In this document: positions 6,931 to 51,869 of the stretch, piece by piece
Layout of the letters: every line of letters begins with the position of its first letter
How positions within the stretch are numbered: the first letter of the stretch is position 1
Assembly (NCBI RefSeq): GCF_006345805.1
Contig: NC_043003.1
Location: forward strand, 90,210,001-90,274,000
Source: Octopus sinensis
Taxonomy: Eukaryota
Length of the DNA: 64,000 nucleotides
Direction of reading: 5' to 3'
The notes under the pieces: model-generated
Told to the model about the DNA's origin: nothing
Seen by the model: the letters and a program-made list of their open reading frames with translations, nothing else
Databases searched by the model: none
Made by a program: the position numbers and the translations under genes

Positions 6931-7053
6931 ATTCATATAGATTCTAAAGCAGACTTTGGTATGCCCTCTCTGTTTCCTGGTCACTTACATTTTAAATGGC
7001 ATTCACAAAACCAAATGGATTCTATGAATCGCAGCAGAAATACTTTCATAATG
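6931..7053 (+). CDS. Internal exon of UPF0489/C5orf22-like gene A (IHIDSKADFGMP...RNTFIM)
   Basis: TCTTTCAG acceptor, GTTTGT donor, 123 nt, phase 0/0; resembles the H-x-D-S-H-x-D motif; joins in frame to 17094. Confidence 0.75.
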
Positions 7054-7199
7054 GTTTGTATCACTTTTGACTATTTAATTTATGATGTGTATGTCTCTTC
7101 TATTTTATTAATTATTATAAAACTTCCACTGAGGAGGTTTCCAACAAAGATACAAAACTCCATCTTTGGGATGTAGTTAACACAGACAAATTCACATTT

Positions 7200-8940
7200 G
7201 GTACTTGAGGAAAGTCTTGCATATCTTTACTGTTCCACTTGCAGATTGCACTTGTAATGTATGAATTAGCCGGTTGATTTCTCTTTCTGAAAATCCCAGT
7301 TTATCCAGATTCTCCTTTAAGTATTTACTAACAAAACCCAGCACACCAATTACTATTGGTATGGATATGAATTCATAGTCTGGATATACAAGCTGGTGGT
7401 TTTGAAGCAGTTATCCATAGAGATCCTCTTTTTCTTTGATTTTCAAAGAGATATTTATATCTGCAGGGCAGCTGACCTCTATATGGTACATACCTTTGCT
7501 CTTCTATCCCAAACAACAATATGTTATGTTTACATTTGACAGAAGTTTTGATAGGAATATTCCACCAGTATTCCTTGAGTTGGAGTTTATGAATGTATTC
7601 CAAAATACAGTTTATTTCAGGACAGTCTTTTTTGAAGATGGCATTGTAAATTGGTTTAGCAACATTCTGCCACATAGGGAGGTAGTACCGTGGTGACATT
7701 TTAGGACAGCTGCTAATCACATGTATGATGTCTCCCATAGACTACACATGCGGTGGCACCTTGGGATTACAAGAGCGTCACTGTCTCTCTTTTTCACCAG
7801 GTACTTTGTGGCAATCACCAGGTACTTTGTGGTACTTTGTTCCCCGATTGCAAACTCATAGCCCTCGAAGTGTGGTATAGTGGTCTTGTGTCCAAGAGAG
7901 GCTGCACTTCATGTCAGTTCTACTGTCTTCTTCAAGATTCTTGGCAACATACCCGTGCATAGTCTTTTTTTTTTGTATGCTGAGTGCTTTCCATCCATGT
8001 CTTCTCTGAGGTAAAAGAGCCCAGCTGTTTTGGGGCTGTATAGGAAATCATCAGGAAGTGAGTGCTTCTTGAGGAGTGCAACTGCTAACTTCTACAATGT
8101 TACTCACTTCACTTTTCAGCACTGCATTTATATATTTATGTTTGCTGCTTTGTGTGGAATGGGAGAGATAAAGAGACCATTGATGCACAGGTTTGGAGTT
8201 TGGGGGATTGACTTTCCTCATTCTATAACCAAATATGAACATTTCTTTTGGCCAAATTCCATGCCTATATCGGCTGAATATGTTATTAATTGCAGTTGTT
8301 TTTTAGCATAAATCTTCAGGTCGTCTACAAAGAAATTATGGGTTACATTGATATTTCTAGAAGTTGAAGATCCTAGCATGTAACCATTTTCTGCAGTAGC
8401 AATGATAATGGATTCAGTGCCAAAATGAAAAGAAGTACAAGAAGACTATCTCCCTGGAATATTCCCTTTGAAATGCCTATACTATCAGAAACAATTATTC
8501 TGTTTTCAGTTGTAAGGATAAGAATTGTTGTCCATGTCTTTCTGAGTCTCTCTATAGCAACAATTAAGGTAGTAAGTACTTTTGCCAAATGTAGGCACTT
8601 CAGCAGCCATGAATGAGGGATAGTCAAATGCCCTCTTATTGTCAAGCCATGCTGTCACAAGGTTTCTGCATTGTTTTCTCACTTCAGACAGTACAGCTTT
8701 GTTTATTAAAAGTTGTTTGACACATCCCCCACTCTCTTCTTTCCACCAGCCTGTTCACAATGTTGTTCGACTCACAATGGTCCTGGAGGAATTGGTTGAG
8801 GCAACTTGTGTACAGTTTGTACATAATGTTTAGGCAAGCAATGAGCCTTCAGTTTCCTGCCATTTCAGTGATTTCATTTTTGGAAACAAGATTTGTTCTT
8901 GCTGTAGCAAGCCAATTTGGTATTCCATAGTCCTATATTT
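7200..8940 (-). mobile_element. Degenerate R4/Dong-like non-LTR retrotransposon (RT plus restriction-like endonuclease)
   Basis: IPHSWL...KGIFQGDSL..LLFILALNPLS (RT); DIIHVISSCPKM (Zn-knuckle remnant); EYWWNIPIKT. Confidence 0.75.
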
Positions 8941-8984
8941 ATATACATTTATATATATATATATATATAGTTAATTCAAACATG

Positions 8985-9240
8985 AAAACACAATGAGAAA
9001 ACACAACGCGGGGACGTGGAACAAGTATAGTGTTATTGGACACTCAGGAAAAGAAAGAAAGAAAGAGGATTTAATGTTTCGAGCGGAGCTCTTCGTCAGA
9101 AACATAGGAAAAGGAAAGGTCTAAGGAAGGGAAGATGGAGGAAAAAAAATCGCCAACGGTACACATGCGGTCACATTTTGAATGACTGGAAGGGAATGGG
9201 TGAAGAAAAAGTTCTTTCAAAGACAGGAGAGTGCAAGAAA
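8985..9240 (-). mobile_element. PLE-derived repeat with a minimal hammerhead-like motif (9069-9103)
   Basis: Minus strand GTTT-CTGACGA-A-GAGC-TCC-GCTC-GAAA-CA-TT-AAAT. Confidence 0.6.
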
Positions 9241-10500
9241 AGGAGGTATGTGTGTGTAAGTGTGGATATGTGCGTGCGCGCAGGTCTGTGTTTGTGTTTA
9301 TCTATGTGTGTAATGATAGCATGTGTGTCTGTGTTTGTGTTTGTGTGTATGTATGTGTGTAATGATAGCACGTGTGTCTGTGTGTGTTTATGGCTGTTAA
9401 TCTATGTGTGTGGTTGGGCTTAGTATCGTTTTAAAGTCAAGGAAGAATGAAGTAGGAGTGGCTCTTGTGTCTACCTACACATGTGCATAGAAGAATGGTC
9501 AGTGGAAGGTACTGGTAGTTTGAAGTATGTGTGTGTGCGTATATGTATTGTGTGTGTTTTGTTTGTAGTGTGTGTTCGTGTGTGTATGCGTAGAGGTTGT
9601 GCGTGTGGGGAATAACTACTTTACTTTGTGTATGTGTGCGTGTTTGCTGGTATGTGCATATGTGTGTATACATGTATGTATAATTGTGTACGTGTATGTA
9701 TGAGTGTGTGCTGTGTGTATGGGAGGTATGTGTGGGTTCATTTGTGTGTGTGTGTGTCTATGTGCATGTAGTTGTGTGTGCATATATGTGTGTGTGTGTA
9801 TGTGTGTGCGTGTATGCGTATGTGGGTGTATATATGTGTATCTGTGGGGTTGTCAGTGTTAGGTGTGTGCGTGTGTGCATGCGTATGTGTGTGCATGTTT
9901 GTGTGTGTGTGTCTGTGTTTATATGTGTATATGTATGTGTATGTGTGTGCGCATGTATGCATATATTGTGTGTGTATGTATATATATATAGGTGTGTATG
10001 TGAATTTGTGTAGGCATAATGTGCGTGCTTGTGTGTGCGTGTGTGCGTGTGCCCATGTGTGTATAATTGTGTGCATGTCTGTATGTATATTGTTTGTTGG
10101 AGGTATATGTGCGAACCTGTGCTTGTGTGTGTACATGTGTATATGTGTGTGCGTGTATTATGTGTGTGTGTGCATGTGTATATGTGTGTGTGAGCGTGGA
10201 GATGTGTGTCAGGTTGTGCATTTTGTTGTGTGTATGTGGTTGTGTGTACGTTTACATGTGTGTCTAAAGGTATGTATGTCTGTGTGTGCATGGGGTTGTG
10301 TGGGATAGGTTTCTGTGCATTCCTGTGTGTGTGTGTGCATGGGTGTATGTGGGTGTGTGTGTATGTGTATGTATGCATGTGTGTATGTGTGTATATATGT
10401 TCATGGATGTATGTTGTATGTGTGTAGTGTGTGGGAGATTTTTGTGCGTTTGTGGATACGTAAGTATGTGTGTGTATGTGTTCATGTATAAAAACAATAA
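9240..10500. repeat. Long degenerate (TG)-rich low-complexity tract
   Basis: Directly visible. Confidence 0.9.
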
Positions 10501-10715
10501 ATAAAAAAAACAAAAAATTATAAAAACAATAAAATATATAAAATATATGGAAGTTGATCCAACATAAAAGACGCAATTACAAGTAAGAAATGAAAAATGA
10601 AGAAGAGAGAAGAAATAAAGTTGCTTATTGCGGGAGGTGTAGAGGCAGTCACTAAGAGGAGGGGGCTATGTTAAGTCCGTGATATATATATACACACACA
10701 CATATATATTTATGT

Positions 10716-10792
<77 letters not shown>

Positions 10793-10795
<3 letters not shown>

Positions 10796-11188
10796 GCCCT
10801 ACAAAGGCTCATCAACTGTTTTGAGCAAGCATGTAATGACTTTGGCTTAGTTATCAGCCTCAAGAAGACCAACATTATGGGTCAGGCTACATCGTACATC
10901 CCAAACATACATATTGGAGACCACAGATTACAGGAGGTGAAGAAGTTTACCTATCTTGGCTCTACCATCACCTACAACCTATCCCTTGATGCTGAGCTCA
11001 ATATACGCATTGGCAAGGCAGCTGCTGTGATGGCCCGACTCTCCAAACGGGCATGGGACAACAATAAGCTGACCAAGACCACAAAAATGAAGATCTACCA
11101 GGCATGTATACTTAGCACTCTACTGTATGGAAGTGAGACTTGGACGCCATACACACGCCAAGAGCGTCGCCTAAATATCTTTCACGTG
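10793..11188 (+). mobile_element. RTE-BovB-like RT C-terminal fragment
   Basis: LQRLINCF...[10 protein letters not shown]...FTYLGSTI...RIGKAAA...LLYGSETWT. Confidence 0.85.
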
Positions 11189-11700
11189 TAACTGCAAAGA
11201 CCCGGGCTGCTTCCTCCACCAGTTTCTCATAGCCCAACCAATCCAAAGTACCTGGATTGCAGAACGACCTGCAGTGCTTACCTTGGATCGTAAGGTGACC
11301 TGCTGTTCTTGAGGAGACCTATTGAGTCAAGTACATCAACATCAAAATAAATATCAAATGAAAATTGTAGTTGTGATACCTGTGCCAATGGCGCATAAAA
11401 AGCACCATCCAAACGTGGCCGATGCCAGTGCCGCCTTGACAGGCTTCTGTGCCTGTGGCACGTAAAAAGCATCATCCGAATCGTGGCCGCTGGCAGCCTT
11501 CCCTGGCACCTGTGCCGGTGGCACGTAAAAAGCACCCACTACACTCACGGAGTGGTTGGCATTAGGAAGGGCATCCAGCTGTAGAAACACTGCCTGATCA
11601 GACTGAAGCCTGGTGCAGCCTCCTGGCTTCCCAGACCCCAGTAAAACCGTCCAACCCATGCTAGCAAGGAAAATGGACGTTAAATGATGATGATTATATA
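11187..11700 (+). mobile_element. RTE 3' tail
   Basis: Ends GCAAGGAAAATGGACGTTAAATGATGATG; first ~237 bp are the reverse complement of 11721-11958. Confidence 0.85.
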
Positions 11701-11720
11701 TACATATATATATATATATA

Positions 11721-12930
11721 ATCGGCCATGTTTGGATGGTGCTTTCTATGTGCCATTGGCACAGGTATCACAACTACAATTTTCATTTGATATTTATTTT
11801 GATGTTGATGTACTTGACTCAATAGGTCTCCTCAAGCACAGCAGGTCACCTTACGATCCAAGGTAAGCACTGCAGGTCGTTCTGCAATCCAGGTACTTTG
11901 GATGGGTTGGGGCTATGCGAAACTGGTGGAGGAAGCAGCCCGGGTCTTTGCAGTCACAGCATATCTCCAGAGATCTTCCCTTAACGTTGCTGCACCTCTT
12001 GTGTGTCCATAGCTTACACTTGGTGCATCTTATAGAGTTTCTACCTATGCCTTTCCTACAGATCGAGCAAGGTCATCTACCTGAAGGCGTTTGTGACTTG
12101 TCTACCTTCCTACTTATTAGGACTTTGGTTTTAGCTAGGTTGACTCTAAGGCCCTTCAATTCTAATCCTTGCTTCTACACCTGAAACTTCTCCTCCAGTT
12201 CTGATAGTGACTCAGCAATTAGAGCAAGGTCATCAGCATAGAGGAGCTCCCAGGGGCATCCTGTCTTGAATTCCTCCGTTATTGCCTGGAGGACTACGAT
12301 AAATAGGAGGGGGCTGAGGGCTGAACCTTGGTGGACCCCTACCTCTACCTGGAATTCTTCACTGTACTCGTAGCCAACCCTCACCTTACTAGCAGCGTCC
12401 CTGTACATGGCTTGTACAGCTCTTACTAACCATTCATCTATCCCTAGTTTCCTCATTGACCACCAGATAAGGGATCGGGGGACCCTGTTGAAAGCTTTCT
12501 CCATGTCAACAAAAGCCAGGTACAGGGGCTTATCTTTGGCCAGATATTTCTCCTGCAGTTGTCTTACCAGGAATATGGCATCAGTGGTGCTTTTCCCTGG
12601 CACGAATCCAAACTGCATCTCATCTAAACTAACTCTCTCTCTAATTAGTTGGGCTATGACCCTCTCCGTAACCTTCATTACCTGATCCAACAGCTTGATA
12701 CCTCTGTAATTATTTGTATCTAGGGCGTCACCTTTACCTTTGTAGCAGTTGACTATTATGCTGCTACACCAGTCATTGGGTATGACTCCTTCATGTATTA
12801 CCTGGTTAACTATACGGGTGACTAGGCTATAGCCGACACTACCAGATATTTTGAGCATCTCTGCAGTAATTCCTGATGGGCCTGGGGCTTTCCCTGTCTT
12901 CATGCTTCTAATTGCCTCAATTACCAAGGA
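11721..12930 (-). mobile_element. Relatively young RTE LINE RT segment
   Basis: Uninterrupted frame KAPGPSGI...NYRGIKLL...QFGFVPGKSTTDAIF...GVHQGSALSP...LLYADD. Confidence 0.95.
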
Positions 12931-14424
12931 ACATACATACATACATTTACATATACATATATATATACATACATACATACATACATTTACATATATATAT
13001 ATACATTTACAATTTAAAAATTAGGATATAATCTTTTTAAGAATTTATCAAGTAGTTGCGTGGAAATCCTCATAAGAGAAAAATCCATCCTGTTTTCTCT
13101 TAAATATATTTATTTATATTGAGGGCATTACTATACATAAATGCCACACACTAGGAGGGACTCTTAAAGTCAAAACTACCAAAATAAATAAACATATAGT
13201 ACTGAGTGCGGAGCAATGCAACTCTCGAAATGAGCCCTTTAAATACAGAATTCAGCCGCATATCACATGATTTCATAATTAGTGCACAAATGCACTTTTT
13301 AATCCTCAGTGCAAGCATAATTCAAGATTTATAAAGAATGAACAAAAATCAACATACCAGACGAACACCCAATGTATCCTGCATAGCATATAGAATTGTT
13401 CACCCTTTATACATGTATGTAAAAGGCAGGCTTTTTCGAATTGCATCTCGGTAATCTAAGCAGATTTTTTTTTATAAGTAGTGAATATATCAGCATAGCT
13501 TTATATAAGCTGAGTATGAAATTTATAGAGATATAATAATTTTATAAATAAATAAATAAAGGCTAATTTTAAAATAAAATAAAATAATCAAGGGCAGAAC
13601 ATCATAGAAAAAGGGATAAAATGGTTTAATTACTATGATAAAGTATATTTAGCTTGTTAACATCAATAGAGAAGATTTTTAGAAAAAAGTATAATAATTC
13701 AAAACATATTAGACTAAAAATTATATTTACTTGTTAAGATAATATCTATAAAAGACTGATGTTTGGTATCAGCTAAAGGAATAATTAAGTTATGGAACAA
13801 TTCTATTATACACTAATCTTTTTTTTTAAATTAAGGGTTATATTATAGGTTTAGGAAGTTATTATTATTACACCCTACATGATATTTATATTTTCTTATT
13901 GGTACTTATTTAGAAAGGTTATTTATATAAAGGTCCTTATAAATACTAAGAGCAGGAAGGTAGAGTCATTTGAGAAAGAGAAAAATCTAGTAATTTTTAA
14001 AGATCATTTCAAACAATATTATCATACTGTATAAGGTTAAAAAATTTTTTAGGGTAATCAAGAAGATTATTAAGAATGAGAATTTTAACAAAAAGGATAC
14101 CACTTTTTTGAATATTTTGAGTATATACCAAATTTTTTTTTTACCACAATACAGGGAAGAAAAAGAAAATTGCAAAGAAATAGATTAATATTTATATACT
14201 TATTACTTATCTAAAATATTCACTTATTATAAGGTTTCTATGGATATTGATCAATTGGATTTAACTGGTATTTAATAAGGGGGGGGGGGCAACTGAGGTT
14301 AAAGAACATGTCAACTCTATACTGATTTAATTAAAGTTGAACTAATTTTAAGTTGTGGAGATACCAGTATTAACTTATATAAGCTGAAAACCTACAGACT
14401 CTCACACACACACACACACAATCC

Positions 14425-14850
14425 TACACTACTGAAACTGGAAAAAGACCTCATTAACATGGTGAAAAAACTAAAATTCTCGAGAACCACAAACCACATC
14501 CCAAAGAAATTAATTGACATTATCTCTCTGATAACCTACATGTTCTTTCTGATAAAACAGGAAACCTATATTTACTACCTACCGATGCCTATAATAACTT
14601 TACTCTGAAGGAATACAAAATAGTGGCTGATAACAGACTGAATGAAATTAATAAGAAATACTTTGACTTAATTAACGAGCTAAAATAGTGAGATAGGACA
14701 GAATGCTATGCCCCTAAACTCTCATATTTCACTTTTAAGGACTCTTAAGCTAACTTTGAGAGCAAACCCACCATCAGGCTAATCTGCCCAACCTGACTTG
14801 GGCAGAATTAGTAGGTCTATCATTGATAGAATTATCCCTTGTGTTAAAAG
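14425..14850 (+). mobile_element. PLE (Naiad-like) RT N-terminal fragment, degenerate
   Basis: SDKTGNLYLL...DRTECYAPKLSYFTFKDS*ANFESKPTIRLICP...DLGRISRSIIDRI. Confidence 0.7.
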
Positions 14851-14908
14851 AAACACGAACCTCCCACTTTGGGTATCCATGGGAGATATCATTACTTGGT
14901 TCTGCTCA

Positions 14909-16620
14909 TCTCTTCTCTATATATATAAAACTGAGAATGTGTGGCTGTCTGTCTGTGTGTTTCCCTAAAACTTGAGAACTACACAACCAATTTCATTCAA
15001 ATTTTACACATGTCTTACTTAGGGTCCGGCGAGTGTCATCAGCAAAGAAAATTTTGAACTTTTTGCCTAGGGTGAGCCCACAGCAATATCATATCTTCTC
15101 CACTACGATTCCCTAAAACTTGAGAACTACTCAACCAATTTTATTCAAATTTTACACATGCCTTACTTAGGGTCCATGTAGTTTCATGGGCAAAAAAAAT
15201 GTTCAACTTCTTGCCTAGGGCGAGCCCATAGCAATATCATATCTTCTCCACTATTTCAGTATTATGTGTTAAAAGTGAAACAAAAACATTTCTCTATTTT
15301 ATGTCAGATACTTTCACTTTAACAATAAAAATTAGAGATAATAATAACAATTGAATTATATGTAGTAAGTAATAATTAAAATCAAACTAAAGTATAATAT
15401 AATAATTAAATCGTAACATAACAAAAGTAAAAATAGCAATTAGTATAAAATTGCATCAATGACTTGAACTTGAATAAGTGGTTTCACATGAATGGGAATA
15501 AATTAAAAATAAAATTAGCGTGCAGAAATGGAATAGTCTAGATGGAGCTGTGCACATACCTTTTACCACAGCTTTTAGATTATCTGCTAATTAGCTAGCA
15601 TTAAGTATCTATATGAAGTTTGGCTGTATGTAATATCTGTTTTCTCGAACAGCCGCTTTTACTGAGTACTACTGTTGGTTTATTTCTTATACATAAAGGA
15701 CTATAGCTTCAACTGCGTACTGCTTTTTGATTCACCATAAGGTTTGTTGTTATTATTATTACTGTTTAACTATTGTTATCATGTTTGTTGGTTCCCCGAA
15801 AGAGAAATGTTGTTGTGTTGCATTTGTTAAATAATTGTAAACCGTAACCCTCCCCCTTTGGGAAAAGGAGCTTTGGTTATTATTTAAAAATTGAATTGTG
15901 TCCCTGTTTGGGGAAATTGACAATATTTTCACCGTTTACATGGAAGCATTTTTGTTAGAATGCCTTCGATAGAAGAAAGTCCAAAAATGAATTTCGCTGC
16001 AGCCGTTGGCGGGCGGCAAACTCATTAAAATTAAAATGGAAGAAATACAAACCTATTTCGGATTGATCACCAACAAAGACGGTGAATCTAGGATAACACC
16101 ACCAAACGAAATAAATTAAATTAAAGACTATTGTCTATAAAGTATACAATGTAGAGAAAAAAAAAGATTTGAACACCTGGAGGAAAGCACCATTGAAAAG
16201 TGTATTGGTGCGACTATGAAATATATCAAGTATCTAACCAGAGACGGTAAATTTCTCCACAATAGAAGCAAGGTTCGAGTCAACGGAGCGTGCAAGGGAG
16301 TACTCGACTCGAACCTTGAAAATTGGAAATATTTTATTTTTACCTTTATGTTAAAAATGTCCCCCCAGAAGTAGAGGTAGGCTGGATTGTAGCCACGCTT
16401 CTATACAAGAGGGAGGACAAGATACAATTGATCGAAATTGCAAGAGACGGGCCTACAATTCCAGTCTGTTATATATTTTGAGTATTGTTATCACTAGCGA
16501 TATCAAGATATAACTTTGTATTTTATGTGTAGATGTATATATATAGATGTACACATATATATACACACATATATACATGCACTAGCACTATGACCCGGCA
16601 ACGACGGGTCATAATGCTAG
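14909..16620 (+). mobile_element. Non-autonomous Helitron, full length
   Basis: A|TC start; 3' hairpin TATGACCCG-gcaacga-CGGGTCATA then CTAG|T; second copy at ~58745-60374. Confidence 0.88.
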
Positions 16621-17093
16621 TTGAATAATAAAATGAAAACTCTATATACCATTTGATATTAGTAATTACTACCAATCTATTAAGCCTGTAAAATGAGTAT
16701 CACATTACCACCATATAAGCAGTGCCTTTCCATTCTCTTTAAATGTGTTTGACTATGGGGAAATATTACCTTGCTTGGAAACAGGCGAGGGTTGGCAACA
16801 GGGCGGATATCTGGCCATAGAAAATTCACCTCAATGAATTATATGATTTTAATTCTAATTAAAAAGATAAAATGATAATGATTTCCAAAAAGTAATATTA
16901 TTAATTTTTTTACTGAATTGAATATGAATACAACTGAATGTGCACATATAAATAGAATGCAGTAGATACTGAAACAAGGTGTAGTACCATTAGTTGATCA
17001 TCACTTTATGAAATGAATACTTTATTTTTCTTGTCTTTAAAAAAGTTTTCATTTTATATTTTCTCATTTATTTATTTTTTTTCTTATTTACAG

Positions 17094-18203
17094 TCTGCAC
17101 TTATTTCCGGTCTCTACAATCATTCTATATGGGTGTGGCCAAAATGGGACACAAAGAATCATATAAAAAACCACAGCATTGTCTTTGTATATTTTGGAAG
17201 GGCAACAAGAGATAATGCTAAGAAACTTCCAGGAAAGACATCAGCCATCTGCTTTTGTATTAGTTATTCAAAGAGAGGTGTAAAAACTTGCTTTGCACAA
17301 CATGGAAACAAATCACCATTCACAGAGAAATCAATTCCTCATACGCAATGTCATATTAAACGTTATGCCAAAATCGAGAAGATTCGTGAAGACCTAGCTT
17401 TGCAGTCACTACAGAATGGCAAGCTGATTCAAAAAGAAGAGAATGTTATACTAGACATTGATGAAGAATATATCGGTTATGAACTCTCTTTCGCTCCACT
17501 TCTTGCTACAGGTTTGACTGTAGCAAATATAACATCTATAAACAGAGAAGTTCAGCGGATAATATGCCCAAAAGTAATGAAAGAGGAAACAAAAGCAGAC
17601 AGTGTTTTGTCTAAGATAATCTTTGAAATTTCCAAACGACGACGGCATTTTTGTATGAAAAAGAAGCCAGAAATTTGTTCAAAATTTCCCATGAGCCACA
17701 ATTTCTCATCTGTTATACATATGTTTACTAAACCTTTGTCATCGCTGTCTCCTGCCCTGTCTTGTAAGAAAAAAGTTGCTACAAAGTATTTAGAAAAATT
17801 TGCTTTAAAGTTAGCATCATTGAAAGAGAAACAGTTACTTGCCATACGTGAAGTTGGCTTTTGTTTTACTCCACTTCCTAAGACACTTAATTGGGAATAC
17901 CACTTTCAGCTTTGTCTTGGTGGAAGTGTTTTGAATAACAGTATTCGGCGTCTTCATTCATTACAACAACAGGAAGTCTTTTCCCGTATTGAATTCCTTC
18001 AGAAATTCATGTCTGAAGCTAAATTTCGACCAAGATTAATAACTCTGGCAAGGTCTCTTCGGAGTGGCTTTACACCTCGTAAATATTTTCGTAAAATTGA
18101 GCGAGAAATTCTCTCCAGTTTTCATGTTTTTCACTCTAAACTCCATGTTCACTATGACAGTAGTTTACTTGGTGGCAAGTTTGGTTGGCCTAAACGTCAT
18201 TGA
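17094..18203 (+). CDS. Terminal exon of UPF0489/C5orf22-like gene A (369 codons plus stop)
   Basis: Long polypyrimidine tract and TTTACAG acceptor; open to TGA; motifs HSIWVWPKW, ILDIDEEY, PRLITLARSLRSGFTP resemble UPF0489 blocks. Confidence 0.8.
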   Translation, partial: SALISGLYNHSIWVWPKWDTKNHIKNHSIVFVYFGRATRDNAKKLPGKTSAICFCISYSKRGVKTCFAQHGNKSPFTEKSIPHTQCHIKRYAKIEKIREDLALQSLQNGKLIQKEENVILDIDEEYIGYELSFAPLLATGLTVANITSINREVQRIICPKVMKEETKADSVLSKIIFEISKRRRHFCMKKKPEICSKFPMSHNFSSVIHMFTKPLSSLSPALSCKKKVATKYLEKFALKLASLKEKQLLAIREVGFCFTPLPKTLNWEYHFQLCLGGSVLNNSIRRLHSLQQQEVFSRIEFLQKFMSEAKFRPRLITLARSLRSGFTPRKYFRKIEREILSSFHVFHSKLHVHYDSSLLGGKFGWPKRH

Positions 18204-18760
18204 CAAAATGTAACAGTCCGACTTCATTAAAAAGTTTGACAGAATAACATGTAACAGTCATGTAGGAATGTATTCATGATTTAATTTTGTTTTTGTTTGG
18301 AAAATTTAGTTTAGTTTATGATTTGGGTTTTCCATAGTTAATTAATTTACCATTTGATACCACTTTTTAAAAGTTTTTTTTGTTGTTGCAGAAATGCTAT
18401 TAACACTTTTTTTAAAACAAATTAATTAACAGCAAACATCATTCACTAATAATTAGAAAAAACATCTCAATAGTTTTCCAAATTAATAACCTCTTTTCCT
18501 TTGATCTCCCTAGCCATTACATGACAGATAAATTTACAGTTATCTCCATTGTAGCCACGTCAACTGACAATGTGTGCACTGTCTTACTCATTTAAAATAA
18601 GTTCACTTTGTATATAATAGTTGAAGGACATTGGTTGCTGAAGTCATGGTCAGGACTTATTTTTAATTACCTATCATTGATATTATAAATTAAAATAATT
18701 TTTCTTTTCAAAAACTCATGTAAATATATATTCTGCTTCTACATTTACCAAGGTGTGGTA

Positions 18761-31239: not shown

Positions 31240-33680
31240 CTTCTGTCATATGTTGTGGTGTGTGCTAGTGTTCCATTCCTGTTTCCTATTCAGGCTAGGT
31301 TTATCTTCTGTTATGTGTGTAGCTTCCGTAATTTGTCTGATTGTTGTATCTGTTGAGTGTGTGGACAAGATTTTAACTTCTATGTTGTTGATTGAGCCCC
31401 TGTGTTCCTGCTCGGCGTGTTGGTACAGAACCGATGAGCTCATTCCTTCCTTAAGTTCTCTCCAATGGTCATTTACCCGCTCTCCTATGCTCCGTGCCGT
31501 TTCCCCTATGTATGTTGTCTTGTTACTGCATCGTCCCTCTATATATCTTATACTATAGACTACATTTCTGGCTTTACAGTTTGTTTGTGGGCTAAATCTA
31601 CACAGTATACTTCCTATCCATACAGGGGGTTCTACTAAAAGGGTAGGTTCTACCGATTATGGATTTGATAGGGTTGCCTGGCCTTTCAACAACCTTAATC
31701 CTTAGCTTAAGTTTGTCTAGGGCCCTTCTAAAGCAGTACGCCAGTTCACCTCTAGGGGTGGTGTTGACAAACATGACACTCTGGTATTTGTGGCTATCAT
31801 ACCAAGAGTTGGCCTTCCCTATTTTCTTCTTTGTCCTTTCAATAGTGTTCCATGACTTGCTTCTATAGAGTGGGCAAACCCCATTCCTATCATTACATAA
31901 GATAGTATCAAATTTCTTAATGGCTTCTTTGTATACTCTGATCCTTTCTTTATGGCTGTAACCTGAGAACTGCATGCGGTGAATGAAATGTTGTATGTGT
32001 CTCTTTAACTCTGTAGGCTCGCACATGCAGGACACATTTCGCATTATTCTGATGAGGTCTGCCATCAAAATATTGAATTTGGCATTGTTTGCGATAGCTG
32101 AGTTCCGGTGGATCAAGTATTTGGAGGCCATAGGTTTGGCATAGTACAAATGAAGGATTTGGGTTTTATTATTCTCAGTTTCTAGCCAGAGTTCTGTGTC
32201 TAGTACTTGTAGTCTATGGTTAGGGTGTTTAGTAGGGTAGTCTATTGTGACCTAAATACTCTGGTGGATGGAGTTAGCTATTTGCTGGATGCTCTCCATA
32301 GTATTAGTTTCTATTACTATATCAACAGTACTCTCTTGTGGGGGTGCCTTTACCACTATGTTGATATCATCAACATAGCGAGAGTACATTCACGAGTATG
32401 GAGTTCTGTGTTAGGCATTCCTTAAGCCTTCTGTCCCATCATACCATGAAAAGGTTGGCCATATCACCGGCGATACTAACGCCAATGGCTGCCTCCTCGT
32501 CCTGGGCATATATTTTATTGTTAAACTTTAATGTGTGGCCTTTTAGGGTAACTCTTATACTAGTTCCTAGTGCATGTGCGATCATTTTCTTTACCTGATG
32601 GACATTTGCGGGGGTCCATATGGCTCTGGTCCATCCGCTCCATCTCTCTATATGGGTCTTCCTAGCCATAGAAGTAATTGTGGGTGGTCTACCTCTTAAA
32701 CGTCTATTGGATCAGAAACTACTAAGATCATGTTTATCTAGGTATTCGTTGTCATATGTCAGTCTAAGTAGGAGGCCCAGTTCCTCTGTGTTGACATTGC
32801 GGAACTCCACCTCGCTCTCGTTGATCATCTCCATGCACTTCTCCACTGCAAAATCCGCGTTGATTGATGGGTATAGGGATACCACATCCATGCTACTCAC
32901 CATACATCCTGTCAGGTTGCAAGTGTTGTTACAGTCATTGATCCTGCTGAGGAGATCTTCCGTGCTGTCACAAACATCAGGTGACATCTGGATTATAGGG
33001 CATATGATCATTGAGAGGAAGTAGGAGATTCTGTAGTTGCTAGCGATATTTGCTCCACAGACTGGTCTTGTTGGTGGTCCTGCTATAGGGACAGTGGTTA
33101 CTTTATGGTCCTTGCGAAGTCCATACAGTGCCAGGATAATCGTTGTTCCAGGCTTGGAAATTGTTTGCTGTGCGTTTCTGGGGTCCCAGAACAATTGTCC
33201 ACATCATCATGTGGGCGTTGAGGACCTTTTCTCTCTCCTCATGCGCCTGTAAAGTTGTTACTTTTGTATTGGCAATATGAGGTTGCATTGCCTGGATGTA
33301 GTTCGGTAAGCTGTCTACTGAAATAAGGCCAGACGTATCTGTGGGAAGGCATACCATCTCTCTGTTCCTCGTGCGCTGAATGAGCTTACGTGGGCCACAT
33401 GCGGGTTTAATCCTGAGTTGTTGGGCCTCTGTCTTATTCTGTCTCTGTCTCTTAGTGTATAGTTCTAAAATCTGTCTAAGTTTGGTCCTAGCTATAGTGA
33501 ACTGTGCTTCCATATGGTCATTAGTATGTCTTGAGATGCAGACCCTTTTGTTAAAGGGTAATGTTGTCGGATAAATCTGGCTCATGTTGTAAGATTTGTC
33601 ACATATGTTGAAGAATTGAGTGTCAAAGGGGTGGGTATACATGTTAATGACCCTTCTAGGGTTATCTTCTTCATTACCGT
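31240..33680 (-). mobile_element. Penelope-like element (RT, Cys-rich linker, GIY-YIG), frameshifted
   Basis: SSMDVVSLYPSI, AIGVSIAGDMANLFM, YYAKPMASKYLIHRNSA, NCKARNVVY...YIGETARS. Confidence 0.9.
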
Positions 33681-33689
33681 TACTACTAT

Positions 33690-33876
33690 TTCTGTTGTTA
33701 CTGTTCCCATCATCAACCCCATTATTGCCACCATTACCACTATCATCACCACCACTACTACTACTATTACTATCACCACCACAACTATCACTACTACAAT
33801 CATTACTACTTCTACTGTTACCACCACCACCATTACTACTACCACCACCACCGCTACCACTACCACCACCACCACC

Positions 33877-33916
<40 letters not shown>

Positions 33917-34156
33917 TTACTGTTATTCCTACCACTACCATTATTGCTATCATTCTGATTATCGCTAGTGATATTCTCATTGTTCCTGTTTCTGGTGTAT
34001 GTTACTGTTCCCATCATTACCACTATCATCACCACCACTACTACTACTATTACTATCACCACCACAACTATCACTACTACAATCATTACTACTTCTACTG
34101 TTACCACCACCACCATTACTACTACCACCACCACTGCTACCACCACCACCACCACC

Positions 34157-34196
<40 letters not shown>

Positions 34197-34270
34197 GGAA
34201 CAGTAACAACAACAACAACAATAATAATAATAATAATGATAATAATAATAATAATAATAATAATAATATT
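33690..34270. repeat. Compound (ACC/ACT/AAT) trinucleotide tract with an internal duplication
   Basis: A ~180-bp block near 33730 recurs near 34015. Confidence 0.9.
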
Positions 34271-34454
34271 TGTTTTGCAAGATTTTTGATGTAAAATCGT
34301 GTGTTGAAACAGATATTGTTGTATTTAGGAATGGTCATTTTGTAAGTTTATCCAATAAAAACACACACACTATATATTTGGTGTTACTTTGCTTCACTGC
34401 TTGGAATCGAACTCGGAATCGTGCAAAGAATATAAGTAGCGATCGTGATACACA

Positions 34455-35040
34455 CCACGAAGAAATGATCAAGTTCAATAATGATCTGTTAAGCAACAAC
34501 TACCCCAAAAGTATACTATCCACTCCAATTATGAAGAAGAGAGAGGACGAGGCCAATAAAGTGTCCACAGTCTGTCTACCTTATGTGAAAGGCCTCTCCG
34601 AAAAGATACAAAAGATATGCAGCCCATATGACATCAGGACAGTATTCAAGAGTAATACAACACTTCGCAAATATCTCCTTCGAGTAAAACCACCAATAGA
34701 AGAGAATATGACCAAAGACTGCATGTACTCCATCCCACGCAGCTGTGGTAGGTTACACAAAGGCGAAACATGCCGCCCCCTCAAAATAAGGGTAGAGGAA
34801 CATCGCAAAGCTGTGACACGGGGAGATATTGATAAATCGGGTATAGCTGATCATGTATGGAAAAAGGAGACCACTTCCCCCCATGGGATGAAGTTAAAAT
34901 AATAGACAGAGAACACCACTGGAAAATACAAAAACTAAAAGAAGCAGCACATATGCTAAGACACAACAACCTCCTAAGCAGACCGAGTGCAGATATGAGC
35001 AGCATATGGGAACCGGTATTAAGGAAGGATAGGAAAAGAT
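34455..35040 (+). mobile_element. Penelope/Poseidon-type PLE 3' fragment (RT thumb plus GIY-YIG)
   Basis: CLPYVKGLSEKIQKIC...MYSIPRSCGRLHKGETCRPLKIRVEEH...SGIADHVW. Confidence 0.88.
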
Positions 35041-35639: not shown

Positions 35640-36745
35640 TTCCATATCCATTTCCACTTCCTCAGAGTTGGCACTGTCAATGTAGGCACATTGAAAGATA
35701 GTTCTGGTGAGATTGTTGAGATGCTTGAATGGAGACATGTTCATGTGTGTTGCATTCAAGAAGTAAGGTGGAGAGGAGCTTCAGCCAGGTTCCTCACAGG
35801 CAAGAAATATAGGTATAAAATCTTCTGGGAAGGTAACTGATGGTGTAGGTGGTGTTGGCATACTTCTAGCAGAGAAATGGGTGGATAAGGTGATTGAGGT
35901 AGTCAGAGTACTTAAGCCTAGGCTACTTTTTCAGTGTAGTATAACAACAATTATCTCTGCCTATGCCCCACCAAAAGTGGGTCTGCCAAATGAACAAAAG
36001 AAACATTTTTATGATATTCTTCTGCAGGTTATCTCATAGACAAATGACAATGACCTCATCTTCATGGCTGGTGATTTCAATGGACATGTTAGGTAGCTCC
36101 TGAGTATCTTCCATGGTGTACACAGGGTCCATAGAATTGGTTCCCAAATTGAGGTGATGATCTGCAACACAAACTTCGGAAAGCTAACCAGTTACCTGAT
36201 AATCTACCAATTGGATGGCCATGCTAGTCAAATTGATTACATTCTTACCAGAAAATGATATGCATGGTTACTCATAAATGCAAAGACCTACTTTGGTGAA
36301 GAATGTACCCCACAATATAGTCCTAATAATTTGGAAAATAAACAAATAGATCCATTCGAGTGAGGTCATTGCCAGTGCTTCTGGATTGGCTCCTGTGCAG
36401 GTGGTATGTAAAAAAAACCCATTTGAGTGTAGCCTTTGCCAGTATCACCAGACTGGCCATATGAAAAAACATTCATATGAGGTTGCCAGTGTTGCTGAAC
36501 TGGTTCCTGTGCAGGTGGCACGTAAAAAACACCAGCTGTTGCCAGTACTGCCTGACTGCTGGTGGCACATAAAAGCACACTCTACACTCTCAGAGTGGTT
36601 GGCATTAGGAAGGACATCCAGTTGTAGAAACTCTGCCAGATCAGATTAGAGCCTGGTGCAGCCATCTGGTTCGCCAGTCCTCAGTCAAATCGTCCAACCC
36701 ATGCTAGCATGGAAAGCAGACATTAAACGATGATGATGATGATCC
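35640..36745 (+). mobile_element. RTE APE fragment followed by an RTE 3' tail
   Basis: RVGTVNVGTLK...CCIQEVRWRG; tail ends GGAAAGCAGACATTAAACGATGATG. Confidence 0.85.
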
Positions 36746-39542: not shown

Positions 39543-39858
39543 ATGAGGGGTTGGTCATCAAAAAAATCTCTGCTGGCGTGTTTCCTACTCCTGAATATAT
39601 CCTTAATTCTTTGTAGTGCATATTTAAAATACATCCGCTTTAAACATCGCAGATATCTTAAACAGAGAATAATGAAGAAAGTACATAACATCCATGTACG
39701 TGTACCAGTGGTTCCTGCTCCAGTGGTTCCTACTCCAGTGGTTCCTGCTCCAGTGGTTCCTGTTCCAGTGGTTCCCACACCATTGGTTCATGCTCCAGTT
39801 ATAAAGAAGGATACACGTCCAACTTTGAGAGTCTCTATTATAGAAGATCAACACCAAG
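39543..39858 (+). CDS. First coding exon of UPF0489-like gene B (membrane anchor plus PVVP stalk)
   Basis: ATG, hydrophobic LLACFLLLNISLILCSAYL, ends VSIIEDQHQ (like V-V-E-x-H-H-E); CAAG|GTAGAA donor, phase 1. Confidence 0.72.
39705..39800 (+). repeat. 15-bp coding minisatellite (CCAGTGGTTCCTGCT)x~6
   Basis: Encodes PVVPA/PVVPT/PVVPV repeats. Confidence 0.9.
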
Positions 39859-46444: not shown

Positions 46445-46672
46445 AAACAGCATATATTGATTTCAAATTTTGGCAGAAGGCCAGCAATTTCTGGAGAGGG
46501 GGTAAATTGATTATATTGACCCCAGTACTCAACTGGTACTTATTTTATCGACCCCAGATGAATGAAAGGCAAAGTCAACCTCAATGGAATTTGAACTCAG
46601 AATGTGAAGAAGGACAGAATGCCGCTAAGCACTTTGCCTGGTGCACTTATGATTCTGCCAGCTTGCTGCCTT
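46445..46672 (-). mobile_element. tRNA-derived SINE (AGGCAGCAAGCTGGCAGAATC family)
   Basis: Head plus TTGACTTTGCCTTTCAT core; related copies at 51440-51650 and 53670-53862. Confidence 0.8.
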
Positions 46673-47770: not shown

Positions 47771-47956
47771 GTTTATGTTCTCTTGTTGAAACCGTGCAGA
47801 AGTAAGGAGAATTAAGTGTTGAGAAAAGAAATTGAAAGATTAAGCAGACTCAATGTTGGACATTTTGTTTAAATTACAACATATTTCAAACAAAATAGTC
47901 TTATATAGTTGCCAAATCAAAAAAATACATTGTTGTTTACTTTCTTACTTTTTCAG

Positions 47957-48018
47957 CATTATCATACTGGGCTGATGCTCAGAATGCAGGGATTATAAGA
48001 AACGATGGAAACACGTTG
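47957..48018 (+). CDS. Second exon of gene B ((A)LSYWADAQNAGIIRNDGNTL)
   Basis: TTTTTCAG acceptor, GTATGT donor, 62 nt, phase 1 to 0, compatible with both neighbouring exons. Confidence 0.78.
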
Positions 48019-48473
48019 GTATGTCTTTATTAATCTTGTCTGAATTGATAACTATGCTTTCTCAATAGAACTGTACATAACAATTGTGGAAATAATTTTT
48101 AAAGTTCTATCCAAACCATCTAGATGTTTTAATGAAATATTTTTTAACCTTTAGTCTTCACTTAGGCATTGCTGTATTGACTTTCTCATTGTTGATGTCA
48201 TTCCCTATATAGGTGCAAATGTAATTATTTCGCAAATAAATTGCACTTCATATTCAAGGCTCCAATGAAGCAATTAGGGGTTATTCAGGCACTCAGCTAT
48301 GAGTTCACTGCATCTTATAACAGAACAGCTATAAGCCAATGTTGTTCATAAGATAATCTTTTAGTCTTCCATAGACTTAATGCTGCCATAAACTAATGTC
48401 ATTTATTGGGAAATAGACTGGTATATAAATGAGAGATTACTGGGATCCTATGAACATGTAATATATATATATA

Positions 48474-48506
<33 letters not shown>

Positions 48507-48807
48507 ATCTATATATATCAGTATACTTTGTGTTTAGTTTAAAAAAACATAACAGAAAAGAGCAAGCTAGTAAAATATTTCTTCTGTTTCTCCCTTCCTA
48601 TTTGCTTCCATGGCTTTAAAGAAAGCATTCAAGTTATCTGTACATGACTGGATTTGGTAAAAGTTATGTTTTTAAAGAAAAACAAATTTCTAGTTTTATT
48701 GACACACTTATCATTTATGCAAAACTGGATAGATATTTAAGATCTTGGCTCCCACAACAAATTTCTATATTTTTAACCTGATAGATTATGGCAATGTACT
48801 CGCTTTT

Positions 48808-49210
48808 ACTCTTTTACTTGTTTCAGTCATTTGACTGCGGCCATGCTGGAGCACCGCCTTTAGTCGAGCAAATCGACCCTGGAACTTATTCTTTGTAAGC
48901 CCAGTACTTATTCTATCGGTCTCTTTTGCCGAACCGCTAAGTGACGGGGACGTAAACACACCAGCATCAGTTGTCAAGCAATGCTAGGGGGACAAACACA
49001 GACACACAAACATATACACACACATACATATATATATACATATATACAACAGGCTTCTTTCAGTTTCCGTCTACCAAATCCACTCACAAGGCATTGGTCA
49101 GCCCGGGGCTATTGTAGAAGACACTTGCCCAAGATGCCACGCAGTGGGACTGAGCCCGGAACCATATGGTTGGTTAGCAAGCTACTTACCACACAGCCAC
49201 TCCTGCGCCT
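48808..49210 (-). mobile_element. tRNA-derived octopus SINE, full length
   Basis: AGGCGCAGGAGTGGCTGTGTGGTAAGTAGCTTGC head; homologous to 335-767. Confidence 0.85.
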
Positions 49211-49224
49211 ATACACTCTCTCTA

Positions 49225-49269
<45 letters not shown>

Positions 49270-49540
49270 TGGCCGATGCCAGTATCCTCTGACTGGCCCC
49301 CATGCTGGTGGTACGTAAAAAGCACTATCCGAACGTGATTGATGCCAGGCATGTAAAAAAGCATCCACTACACTCTTGGAGTGGTTGGCGTTAGGAAGGG
49401 CATCCAGCTGTAAAAACATTGCCAGATCAGATTGGATCCTGGTGCAGCCACTGGTTCTGCAGACATCAGTCAAACCGTCCAACCCATGCCAGCATGGAAA
49501 ACGGACGTTAAACAATGATGATGATGATGATGATGATGAT
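49270..49540 (+). mobile_element. RTE 3' tail
   Basis: GGAGTGGTTGGCGTTAGGAAGGGCATCCAGC...GGAAAACGGACGTTAAACAATGATG. Confidence 0.85.
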
Positions 49541-51269
49541 ATATGGTGAAGTCTCACATAAATAAATTAAGTTAATGAAAAGTTTTGATCATCTGAGATC
49601 AATCAAGCAATTAGAATTAATGGCAAAATTGTAGTATAATTTTTCAGCTCAATGTCTTAGGTATGTGAGACTTTACAATATATGTGTCTAGTATGCAAAC
49701 ATTTTCCTGAGATGTTTGCTCTCATTAATATTGTTTGTAATTATAATCAAACCCACTATACTCATTACTATTTTTGTGTATATCAATTACTCTTGCATAA
49801 ATTACTTGTGTTAGCAGTGTTAATTTTTCATACTATAGAATATATTCATAGGTTTTACTTCTTTTGTAAATCAATCAAATTTACTAGATTAATAAAACAA
49901 TTGTAAATGTCTGTTCTGTTTGACATAGGCTGCACAATAACCTTAATGACCTAAGAGATGGTTGAAAGTTGGAGTGAAATAACCAGCTTAAGGGTAGTAA
50001 ATGGAAAGAAGATTAAGTGTAAAGGTATTAGTATAGTGGAGATGGTGATACAGAGAATGTCAATGAGAAGCAATTATGAATAACAAGGTTGCGGATAGTG
50101 TTGATATAGTAGAAGGAATGGATGCGATCAGTTGGTAAGATGGGAGTAGAATTGATGGAATGCAGTGTGATGAAGGACAAGATGAGGGTGAGACTAGCAC
50201 CATGAATTTACAAAGGTCACAATGAGAGTGACATCTACGGAGATGGGTGCACAACTTTGAAATAGAATGAGGGTTTTGTGAAGTGATCTTTAAATCAGGA
50301 GGGCTTGTGGTATAGTGGATCATGTACCAAAGATGTCAGGTGAAAGGAAGGAAATGGCTAAGGAATATGATTGGAAGCCAAAAGGAAAATGATGTCAGGT
50401 GAGAAAGAAGGAAATTTGAGAAGCTATTCTAGCTGTTGGGGTCAGCTAGAATGGATGTGTGGTTGAATTTTCTGCATGTTCCAGCTTCTAGCCAGTGGTT
50501 AGGGTAGTGAGGACTCTGAGTTGTATATCAAGTTCAAGCTAGTGATCAAGGAGTTTCCTTCAAATTCACTCTCAGAGATTCAAATAAGAGAATGTCTTTT
50601 AGAATACACATAACAAGACTAATTTCCAGAAAATGTGTTTAATATTAAAATTATTTTGCCTGATTTACCTATAAATGTTACAACTCTGGCTTTAAATGCA
50701 ATTTCACAGAAGCTGGAAGCTGTAAAATGTAGTGTTTGATTACTGCTGTTGATTTAATAAACCAGAAACAGTGGCATCCATTTGATCCAATTTTTGCTGT
50801 ACTTGTTGAGGTTGTTTAAAAAATGTACCTGATGTTTACAGCAGTTTAGTGTATCTAGTAAATTTAACTCATCTATGAAAGCAGTGACAGTACGAAATGT
50901 ATGAATATGCTCCATATTAAAGGCTAAGTATGATCACTTCTAGTTGTGACAAATTAATAGAATATGCTTCCCTGAGGTGAACTACAACTGAAAAAACTTG
51001 GATGTTACTTTTATAAGTTGGTTTTAAACACCAGATGTACTTTTATCTTCTATATTGACTACTTTGTTCAAATTATTTGATAAACTCATCTTATTGCAGT
51101 TATTTCCTTCCTTTGTTATTTTTAGGTTTTAAATGCTTCTAGAAGGAGTTTTTTTGTCTAGTAATTATTTGAATAATTTCAGTTGATCAGTTTTTTAGTT
51201 CACTGAATTCCAGCTTATTCATATGAGCATGGAAAAGTGAACATTAAACAATGATGATGACGACAATGG

Positions 51270-51650
51270 GCTTCTTTCAGTTTCCATCCATAAAATCCAC
51301 TCACGAGACTTCAGTCACCCTGGGGCCATAGTAGCAAGCATTTGCCCAAAGTGTCATGTAGAGACACTCAAAACCATGTGATTGGGAATCAGATTTCTTA
51401 ACCATTCAGCCACACCTCCATCCTTGTATTAGCTGTGAAATATTGATTTCAAATTTTGGCACATGGCCATCAAGTCCAAGCAAGGAAGTAAGTCAATTAC
51501 ACCGACCTCAGTGTTTAACTGATACATATTTTATCAACCCTGAAAAGCAAAGTTGACCTCGGCAAAATTTGAACTCAGAACACAAAGACAGATGAAAAAC
51601 TGCTAAGCATTTCGCCCAGCATGTTAACAATTCTGGCAGCTCACCGCCTT
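51270..51650 (-). mobile_element. Two adjacent SINE fragments
   Basis: Matches to the 48808 and 46445 families. Confidence 0.7.
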
Positions 51651-51776
51651 ATTAGGTGTGAAATATTGTTTAGAGTTTAGTCAAGTGTTGACGAAATTCT
51701 ATATAAACCTTAACTTGCAACACAATCTTTAAGTTCATGTTTTCTGTATCATTTATATTGTATTGATATTTTCCAG

Positions 51777-51869
51777 GTTTATTTCAGTAACAAAGGAGAC
51801 TTTGAAACCACTTCTATATTTCCTAATCAGTGGGTTACTAAGAACCTCAACAGAAAAACTTCTAAATTG
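51777..51869 (+). CDS. Third exon of gene B (VYFSNKGDFETTSIFP...KTSKL), paralogous to 6931-7053
   Basis: TTTTCCAG acceptor, GTTTGT donor as in gene A, 93 nt, phase 0/0; KxDF and SxFP align with the gene A exon. Confidence 0.68.

Follow-up and report, generated by a model that had tools for sequence, protein, structure and literature searches.

What do a handful of small exons and one large exon, scattered through repeat-rich octopus DNA, encode, and do they still belong to working genes? The question is raised by a stretch of 64,000 nucleotides from Octopus sinensis (RefSeq assembly GCF_006345805.1, contig NC_043003.1, positions 90,210,001 to 90,274,000 of the forward strand), hereafter called the window, in whose own coordinates all positions are given. 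The window holds the 3' part of one gene (gene A) and the first three (5') exons of a second (gene B), a downstream tandem duplicate on the same strand. Gene A is the ortholog of Octopus bimaculoides LOC106873836 and gene B that of LOC128248350, and both belong to the PF12640 family (UPF0489, with a peptide-arginase fold). We consider it probable that the two form a real tandem pair from a membrane-anchored subfamily, in which gene A would no longer work as a binuclear-Mn arginase and gene B would be a relaxed duplicate. The exons, the tandem arrangement and the family call of the original prediction, which had been made from this sequence, are real; the genes had been predicted before in the sister species, and the family was known. 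What is added here is the link to peptide arginases, the breadth of the anchored subfamily, a degraded metal site in cephalopods, and the unequal fates of the two genes, with gene conversion between them.

The setting is as rich in repeats as had been claimed, the introns and intergenic DNA being full of retroelement fragments and microsatellites. The window DNA is AT-rich (26-45% G+C), with abundant microsatellites and fragments of retrotransposons; it is collinear with O. bimaculoides chromosome CM046607.1 at ~91% identity, and its last 5.4 kb are collinear with O. vulgaris OX597820.1 at ~97.6% identity. Both genes are already predicted in O. bimaculoides and lie in synteny on CM046607.1. 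Our gene models rest on genomic DNA, that is, on splice borders, reading phase and collinear homologs. All five exons have the canonical AG/GT borders and compatible phases, and tblastn places the small exons exactly where the original prediction had put them.

Gene A, like gene B, lies on the forward (+) strand. Its third coding exon (6931-7053; 41 codons, cag/ATT...ATG/gt, IHIDSKAD...TFIM) matches LOC106873836 in tblastn (E 3e-19) and has its O. bimaculoides counterpart at L001:33120-33242. It is followed by a 10-kb intron (7054-17093) containing (TG)n-type microsatellites and fragments of retrotransposons without long terminal repeats (non-LTR), and then by the terminal exon (17094-18203; 369 codons plus TGA), which is entered at acag/TCT, reads SALISGLYNHSIWVWPKW...LDIDEEY...ITLARS...GWPKRH to the stop, and carries the LDIDEEY metal motif, ten conserved cysteines and an RSGFTPR motif. 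The homologs are collinear across the 7053^17094 junction and contiguous across TFIM/SALISG. The joined product of 410 residues is 96% identical to O. bimaculoides LOC106873836 (E 2e-267), 76% identical to an Argonauta hians protein (E 1e-210), and 46-48% identical to two squid proteins. The squid orthologs are uninterrupted 559-codon open reading frames (ORFs) on contigs of 2.0-2.8 kb from four independent sequencing runs; because they resemble mRNA, the exon order is supported at the RNA level in a relative.

The 5' part of gene A lies before the window: in O. bimaculoides, exons 2 and 3 are 11.7 kb apart, which places exon 2 ~4.8 kb before the window start. Exon 1, expected to hold the anchor and the EEH motif, was not found in the window or in the 21 kb upstream of O. 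bimaculoides exon 2, a region with assembly gaps (N runs); nothing rose above noise with Argonauta, squid, Bugula and gene B N-termini as queries. At the other end of the gene, the stop codon (in the stretch 18201-18230) is a TGA where Argonauta and an octopod from run SRR11869391 have TCA (Ser) and eight more codons (..KRH-SQNVTVRLH). The stop thus comes nine codons earlier than in other octopods and is shared with O. bimaculoides, and the codons downstream of it are still readable in frame.

Gene B begins with exon 1 (39543-39858). After the ATG this encodes a short basic tail, then a hydrophobic anchor, a stalk that is basic and a proline-rich repeat, and it reaches the degenerate EEH motif IIEDQHQ before ending CAA G/gt in phase 1. 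The predicted membrane anchor (39570-39626, residues 10-28, LLACFLLLNISLILCSAYL) has a top 19-residue Kyte-Doolittle mean of 2.34 at residue 10. The stalk sequence (V-V-P-x-P)n is encoded by a 15-nt tandem repeat (39705-39799, CCAGTGGTTCCTGCT; 6.3 copies with 83% matches in Tandem Repeats Finder) that lacks a counterpart in the Argonauta and squid proteins. No homolog of exon 1 was found in the protein databases, and its assignment to gene B therefore rests on motif, phase and position. Exon 2 (47957-48018, ALSYWADAQNAGIIRNDGNTL; cag/CA TTA...TTG/gt, ALSYW...GNTL) corresponds to O. bimaculoides L002:7563-7622, and exon 3 (51777-51869, found by tblastn; cag/GTT...TTG/gt, VYFSNKGD...SKL) to L002:10919-11011; the splice sites of both are conserved in that species.

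Exon 3 of gene B is paralogous to the gene A exon at 6931-7053: the two align as DNA, flanks included, with a deletion of 30 nt (10 codons) in B. The genes are, as had been proposed, same-strand tandem paralogs. In O. bimaculoides, 19 kb separate exon 3 of gene B from the terminal exon downstream of it; for the window, the collinear O. vulgaris sequence places that exon ~4.4 kb beyond the end. Piecing one architecture together from two partial genes was accordingly legitimate, since the missing parts lie beyond the window ends in the O. bimaculoides and O. vulgaris loci. A lineage-expanded cluster, which had also been proposed, is not what we find: tblastn with family proteins detected no further copy of either gene within the window, what is present is a two-gene pair that O. 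bimaculoides already has, and the anchored subfamily is broad across spiralians.

The annotated O. bimaculoides model of gene B differs from ours at both ends. The counterpart of its first exon (49958-50065, + strand) lies inside intron 2 of gene B in the window and is single-copy in the sequences compared; owing to an insertion of 10 nt and a TAA in frame, the annotated N-terminus is neither encoded nor conserved here, and the annotated start is probably fortuitous. In the O. bimaculoides terminal exon, a CAA codon has become a nonsense TAA (L002:30653-30655, IMSINGDIQ*). The NCBI LOC128248350 model steps over this codon by means of an artificial intron, omitting 11 residues, and an older model (P0008) omits far more. 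A database of 5.8 billion clusters contained no protein resembling the N-terminal 157 residues of gene B, and no transcript-derived protein was found for exons 1-3. A 363-residue Logan protein (P0003) was considered as complementary DNA evidence and rejected, as its contig is collinear with the genomic DNA of the window, including an intron end.

To which family do these genes belong? They had been called UPF0489/C5orf22-like; the first half of that label holds through orthologs, profile and fold, and the second does not, as the subfamily is distinct from the cytosolic C5orf22. A HMMER comparison with Pfam UPF0489, which the original prediction had named among its checks, gave a divided result. 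With the PF12640 gathering threshold at 27 bits, gene A alone gave no Pfam match at E<=1, exons 1-3 of gene B (157 residues) gave none, and an artificial chimera of the gene B N-terminus with gene A reached 24.4 bits (E 4e-5), under the threshold; the full-length orthologs all exceed it (Argonauta 40.1 bits, squids 42.8 and 46.8, Bugula 59.5). PF12640 membership of the octopus genes holds by orthology, not for the window fragments alone.

Profile and structure comparisons lead to the same family. A profile of eight cephalopod and Bugula proteins matches OspR (PDB 8BRP) with E 6.4e-15 in three collinear segments: the N-terminal motifs, the LDID motif, and a C-terminal R-S-x-x-S-G-Y-T-P segment. 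An AlphaFold model of the Argonauta protein, the closest full-length ortholog, has a mean predicted local distance difference test (pLDDT) value of 65.6, with 70-90 in the core. When this model was compared with the PDB by Foldseek, OspR 8BRP was the sole match at E<0.001 (E 2e-11, probability 1.00, target-normalized template modeling score 0.60). PF12640 comprises bacterial peptide arginases, which convert peptide arginine into ornithine in ribosomal peptides at a binuclear Mn site (PMC10028609, PMC12703449). As regards the name of the family, the precomputed annotation of the squid transcript contigs (L004-L007) labels PF12640 as 'FlmR_OhkR_N', while the local Pfam copy still reads UPF0489; the newer label indicates that Pfam renamed UPF0489 after two characterized bacterial peptide arginases.

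The subfamily is old and broad: its anchor, stalk and ten-cysteine domain are found across spiralians, and Octopus has a pair. An index-free hidden Markov model search of 1.84 billion cluster representatives gave 709 matches at E<=1e-3 (148 at E<=1e-30), many of which span the whole 508-position profile, including the C-terminal half that lies outside the Pfam model; a word-indexed protein search with the family profile gave a single new protein, an insect C5orf22 homolog (E 3e-11). The members that carry a name are from bivalves, gastropods and a chiton, from the brachiopod Lingula, the bryozoan Bugula and an annelid; each is labeled 'uncharacterized', and several are adjacent paralogs. What full-length members have in common is a hydrophobic segment at the N-terminus and the motifs EEHHE, H-x-D-G-H-S-D, LDIDEDYFGC and CRSxRDGYTPR. 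In Mytilus, the 90% cluster of one member (P0020) also holds 'deoxyribonuclease-1-like' proteins and 'DNASE1' models of 760-797 residues, which suggests that neighboring genes have been fused in some annotations.

The membrane anchor that had been proposed is present as an N-terminal hydrophobic segment in gene B and in family members, with top 19-residue hydropathy means of 2.81 in Argonauta, ~2.5 in squids and 2.0-3.0 in most full-length members, next to the value given above for gene B. All ten conserved cysteine positions are occupied by Cys in gene A and in the gene B ortholog, and gene A has seven N-x-S/T sequons. From the anchor, the ten cysteines and the sequons, we infer that these would be type II membrane proteins, whose disulfide-bonded arginase-fold domain would be luminal or extracellular.

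Whether such a domain could still be an enzyme depends on its metal site, for which OspR provides the reference: His12 and Asp43 are the ligands of MnA, His41 and Asp167 those of MnB, and both ions share Asp39 and Asp165 as bridges; a mutant of the DxHxD triplet loses both Mn binding and activity (PMC10028609). Canonical subfamily members, Bugula among them, keep all six of these ligands, with EEH intact, D-G-H-x-D, and LDID intact. Squids have E-E-H, D-A-N-A-D and an intact LDID; Argonauta has E-D-H (V-V-E-D-H-Q-E), D-A-K-A-N and an intact LDID. Octopus gene A reads D-S-K-A-D and L-D-I-D (L-D-I-D-E-E-Y), its EEH exon being outside the window, and gene B reads E-D-Q (I-I-E-D-Q-H-Q-A-L) and S-N-K-G-D. 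Since the gene B terminal exon lies beyond the window, its LDID motif was read from the O. vulgaris and O. bimaculoides orthologs, where it is intact (L-D-V-D-E-E-Y, L-D-I-D-E-E-Y).

All known cephalopod members have thus lost the MnB histidine, which is Lys in octopods and Asn in squids, and of the four N-terminal ligands gene B retains a single one, having lost the His of EEH (now Gln) and the first Asp and the His of DxHxD. Compared with the OspR-type motifs, EEH(N/H)EAF, which contains the MnA histidine, is absent from gene B, DxHxD is absent from both genes, and the Asp pair of LDIDxDYF is present in gene A and in the orthologs of gene B. The family-wide R-D-G-Y has also become R-S-G-F or R-C-G-F in cephalopods. 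Outside cephalopods, ligand-deficient paralogs occur in Mytilus (conserved in four species), in an oyster and in a chiton, beside canonical copies; ligand-deficient copies in several lineages imply that the site has been lost repeatedly. One of these, Mytilus P0102 (L-F-S-N-Q-L-D, compared with Y-F-S-N-K-G-D in B), was examined as an ancient ortholog of gene B and rejected: it is a mussel-specific paralog with a convergent loss.

The original prediction had handled A and B as interchangeable. They are not: gene B is strongly diverged, has largely lost the catalytic motifs, and evolves near neutrality, and gene A is subject to purifying selection. Across its 410 codons, gene A differs between the window and O. 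bimaculoides by 18 synonymous and 18 non-synonymous changes, a ratio of non-synonymous to synonymous rates (dN/dS) of 0.26 that departs from neutrality (p=1e-4). The ratio is 0.20 in the terminal exon and 0.058 in its first 155 codons, the catalytic-domain part; the motif exon (6931-7053) has five non-synonymous changes and one synonymous change, too few to interpret. For gene B, exons 2-3 differ between the window and O. bimaculoides by 13 non-synonymous and 2 synonymous changes, and the terminal exon differs between O. bimaculoides and O. vulgaris by 62 and 24 (dN/dS 0.65). The pooled counts, 75 non-synonymous and 26 synonymous, are not distinguishable from neutral (p=0.12). The constraint on gene B is relaxed, and pseudogenization is visible in one species.

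The 3' two-thirds of the last exon of gene B have been overwritten by gene conversion with gene A. The tract in the gene A terminal exon (17376-18210, + strand) is 88-90% identical in blastn to the B terminal exons of O. bimaculoides (L002:30473-31307) and O. vulgaris (L003:10031-10865). Along the exon, A/B identity is 50-65% over codons 1-95 and 80-100% from about codon 100, with a sharp switch near codons 95-100; codons 171-250 (~240 nt) are 97-100% identical between window A and O. vulgaris B. The synonymous distance (dS) between A and B is 0.8-1.06 in the first 94 codons, compared with 0.16-0.22 in the rest of the exon. Distance trees conflict accordingly: the first 160 alignment columns put B outside the group of A and Argonauta, and the remaining columns nest it within Octopus A. 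Several terminal-exon sites co-vary within species. As a consequence of this conversion, part of the apparent conservation of gene B is borrowed from gene A.

Taken together, these observations lead us to propose that gene A most likely encodes a functional protein that would no longer be a binuclear-Mn arginase; it may bind peptides or proteins that contain arginine, and any hydrolase activity would at best be weak or altered. Gene B would be a duplicate that is catalytically dead, evolves under relaxed constraint and is turning into a pseudogene in at least one species. Several points weigh against this explanation. The exon junctions in O. sinensis are predictions from genomic DNA. The Argonauta structure was modeled on an alignment of 11 sequences, and its confidence is only moderate. 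As exon 1 of gene A was not found, the anchoring of gene A itself is deduced from the Argonauta and squid orthologs, and the charges around the gene B anchor, with the following flank more basic than the preceding one, do not agree with the positive-inside rule for a type II protein. The loss of one metal ligand is no proof of lost activity, and arginase variants with single histidine-ligand mutations keep some activity. Finally, gene B may be functional in O. sinensis, as exons 1-3 and the O. vulgaris terminal exon are intact. These exons, joined to that terminal exon (373 codons), form a composite frame of 528 codons, which, at 0.055 substitutions per site and with purely neutral evolution, would stay intact with a probability of ~0.025. 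The O. bimaculoides stop may, for its part, reflect a polymorphism or an error of the assembly.

The strongest alternative is that gene B is a functional, neofunctionalized, non-catalytic paralog kept by selection, whose fast evolution reflects adaptation. The intact frames and their improbability under strict neutrality are consistent with it, as are the splice sites conserved between species and the retention of all ten cysteines; the duplicate may also be old, given that the first 160 columns of the terminal exon place B outside A plus Argonauta, and ligand-deficient paralogs have been conserved elsewhere, for example in four Mytilus species. It has to be set against the neutral-like excess of 75 non-synonymous over 26 synonymous changes, the nonsense codon in O. 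bimaculoides, the failure to find any transcript-derived protein with the B N-terminus, an NCBI model that starts at a different, non-conserved exon, and the share of B's conservation that was borrowed from A. On balance we regard selection on gene B as possible, if unlikely, and prefer relaxed constraint.

A second alternative concerns gene A, which, with the rest of the cephalopod clade, might still be an active peptide arginase or an amidino- or ureohydrolase, working with a single metal or with Lys or Asn in place of the His ligand. Squid and Argonauta-type proteins keep five of the six ligand positions, and octopus A keeps the four other ligands that can be seen in it (both Asp of DxHxD and both Asp of LDID); the catalytic-domain part of the A terminal exon is under strong purifying selection (dN/dS 0.058); and the loss of the histidine is old, as squids and octopods share it, yet the gene has been retained. 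However, canonical subfamily members keep that histidine almost without exception, the OspR triple mutant of DxHxD loses both Mn and activity, the Argonauta ortholog has Asn at the Asp43 equivalent as well, R-D-G-Y has been replaced by R-S-G-F or R-C-G-F in cephalopods, and the A motif exon has five non-synonymous changes against one synonymous change between two Octopus species, though in a small sample. Continued catalysis by gene A therefore seems doubtful to us.

That both loci are dead relics among repeats, with frames intact by chance, is hardly credible: the early stop of gene A, the missing exon 1 (sought in the window and in 21 kb of gapped O. bimaculoides sequence) and the sub-threshold Pfam scores of the window's own sequences could be read that way, but the frame of gene A runs over 410 codons, its splice sites are exact, and the selection test (dN/dS 0.2-0.26, p=1e-4) contradicts the idea for A; gene A is 76% identical to the Argonauta ortholog and 48% to the squid orthologs over the full length, and its early stop is shared with O. 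bimaculoides and costs only a short, variable tail.

Our explanation, with a retained but non-canonical gene A and a relaxed gene B, can be extended into a more ambitious scheme, which we offer as speculation and think rather improbable. The anchored spiralian subfamily might be peptide arginases of the secretory pathway, converting arginine to ornithine in secreted or membrane proteins; cephalopods might have turned the enzyme into a non-catalytic reader of arginine ligands, with gene B as a second, more derived reader whose C-terminal half has been kept compatible with A by conversion. To our knowledge, enzymatic conversion of arginine to ornithine on ribosomal proteins is not known in animals.

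Rfam and transfer RNA (tRNA) scans of the window gave no match, and several long ORFs in the DNA separating the two genes had no Pfam match at E<=0.001. A non-LTR retrotransposon fragment lies in the gene A intron (12175-12978, - strand; Pfam RVT_1, E 2e-24), and relatives of the element at 12.0-12.9 kb occur at the O. bimaculoides and O. vulgaris loci. Another such fragment (3380-4285, + strand) matches Exo_endo_phos (E 1e-7), and the non-LTR retrotransposon-like ORFs at 60613-61869 (+) and 63445-63831 (-) resemble it by eye; the ORF at 60613-60990 had no Pfam match at E<=0.001. An interspersed repeat of ~180 bp is present in at least 10 copies in both orientations (2065-2324, 11520-11697, 36571-36743, 49350-49540, 55182-55353 and others) and gives rise to spurious 'LDALPNANHS' ORFs; both the O. 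bimaculoides and the O. vulgaris locus contain it too, and one of these copies sits ~140 bp upstream of the exon annotated as the first of O. bimaculoides gene A. Between 31598 and 34902, long ORFs cluster on the two strands, among them one of 411 codons (33103-34338, - strand) with long homopolymeric amino-acid runs. This cluster is probably a decayed mobile element; its ORFs at 31598-32149, 32712-33194 and 34270-34902 had no Pfam match at E<=0.001. In the long (TG/CA)-rich microsatellite region at 9600-10700, both strands show overlapping ORFs, the longest of 272 codons, with His-Thr or Cys-Val repeats; these are not genes.

How do these genes compare with known systems? The nearest are the bacterial peptide arginases OspR, FlmR, OhkR and PbsE, which belong to the same Pfam family through the octopus genes' orthologs, and of which OspR is the sole significant structural match. 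OspR-type enzymes and the octopus family share the positions of EEH, DxHxD, LDIDxDY and the C-terminal R-S-x-x-x-G-[YF]-T-P. The octopus proteins are ~250 residues longer, having an anchor, a stalk and ten conserved cysteines, and their insert between LDID and the C-terminal motif is ~100 residues larger; the His41 equivalent is Lys, and in gene B the His12 and Asp39 equivalents are lost as well. The octopus genes also lack the context of a gene cluster for RiPPs (peptides that are made by the ribosome and modified after translation), and the comparison with OspR was made by sequence and fold. OspR has the same superfamily fold as human arginase-1, with six His/Asp ligands for two Mn (PMC10028609). 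Conventional arginases and ureohydrolases (PF00491) have different motifs (GGDHS, DAHxD, SxDxDxxDP), and the octopus family gave no significant sequence or Foldseek match to them, only to OspR.

Human C5orf22 and its animal orthologs belong to the same Pfam family as the octopus genes. C5orf22 is uncharacterized and has only been hypothesized to be a peptide arginase (PMC10028609; bioRxiv 10.64898/2026.05.28.728550). Proteins of this type have ~390-440 residues and no N-terminal anchor, and they keep the full HxDxHxD and LDxDLDFF; the insect homolog (P0010) lacks seven of the ten subfamily cysteines and is 21% identical to the octopus genes. By these sequence comparisons, the octopus genes are best classed as paralogs in a separate subfamily, not as C5orf22 orthologs.

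The closest counterparts in architecture are Lingula LOC106155636, Patella LOC130010275/6, Sinanodonta ACJMK2_034743 and a Babylonia protein named 'UPF0489 protein C5orf22 homolog', which are known as database predictions alone. They have the same layout and length, the ten cysteines and the large terminal exon, and are often adjacent paralogs; nearly all of them keep EEHHE, H-x-D-G-H-x-D, LDIDEDYFGC and CRSxRDGYTPR, whereas the cephalopod proteins do not. For the octopus pair itself, the gain is two correct gene models, together with the demonstration that the NCBI O. bimaculoides B model uses a non-conserved start and skips a stop. Because its active site is degraded, the pair is a less promising entry point into the family, and current views are unchanged by it. 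PF12640 has only recently been shown to consist of bacterial peptide arginases, and its animal members, human C5orf22 included, are still without a function; the anchored, cysteine-rich branch with intact ligands in molluscs, brachiopods and annelids suggests where a peptide arginase activity of animals might be sought, and the ligand-deficient copies in cephalopods, Mytilus, an oyster and a chiton are natural experiments that could help to tell binding from catalysis.

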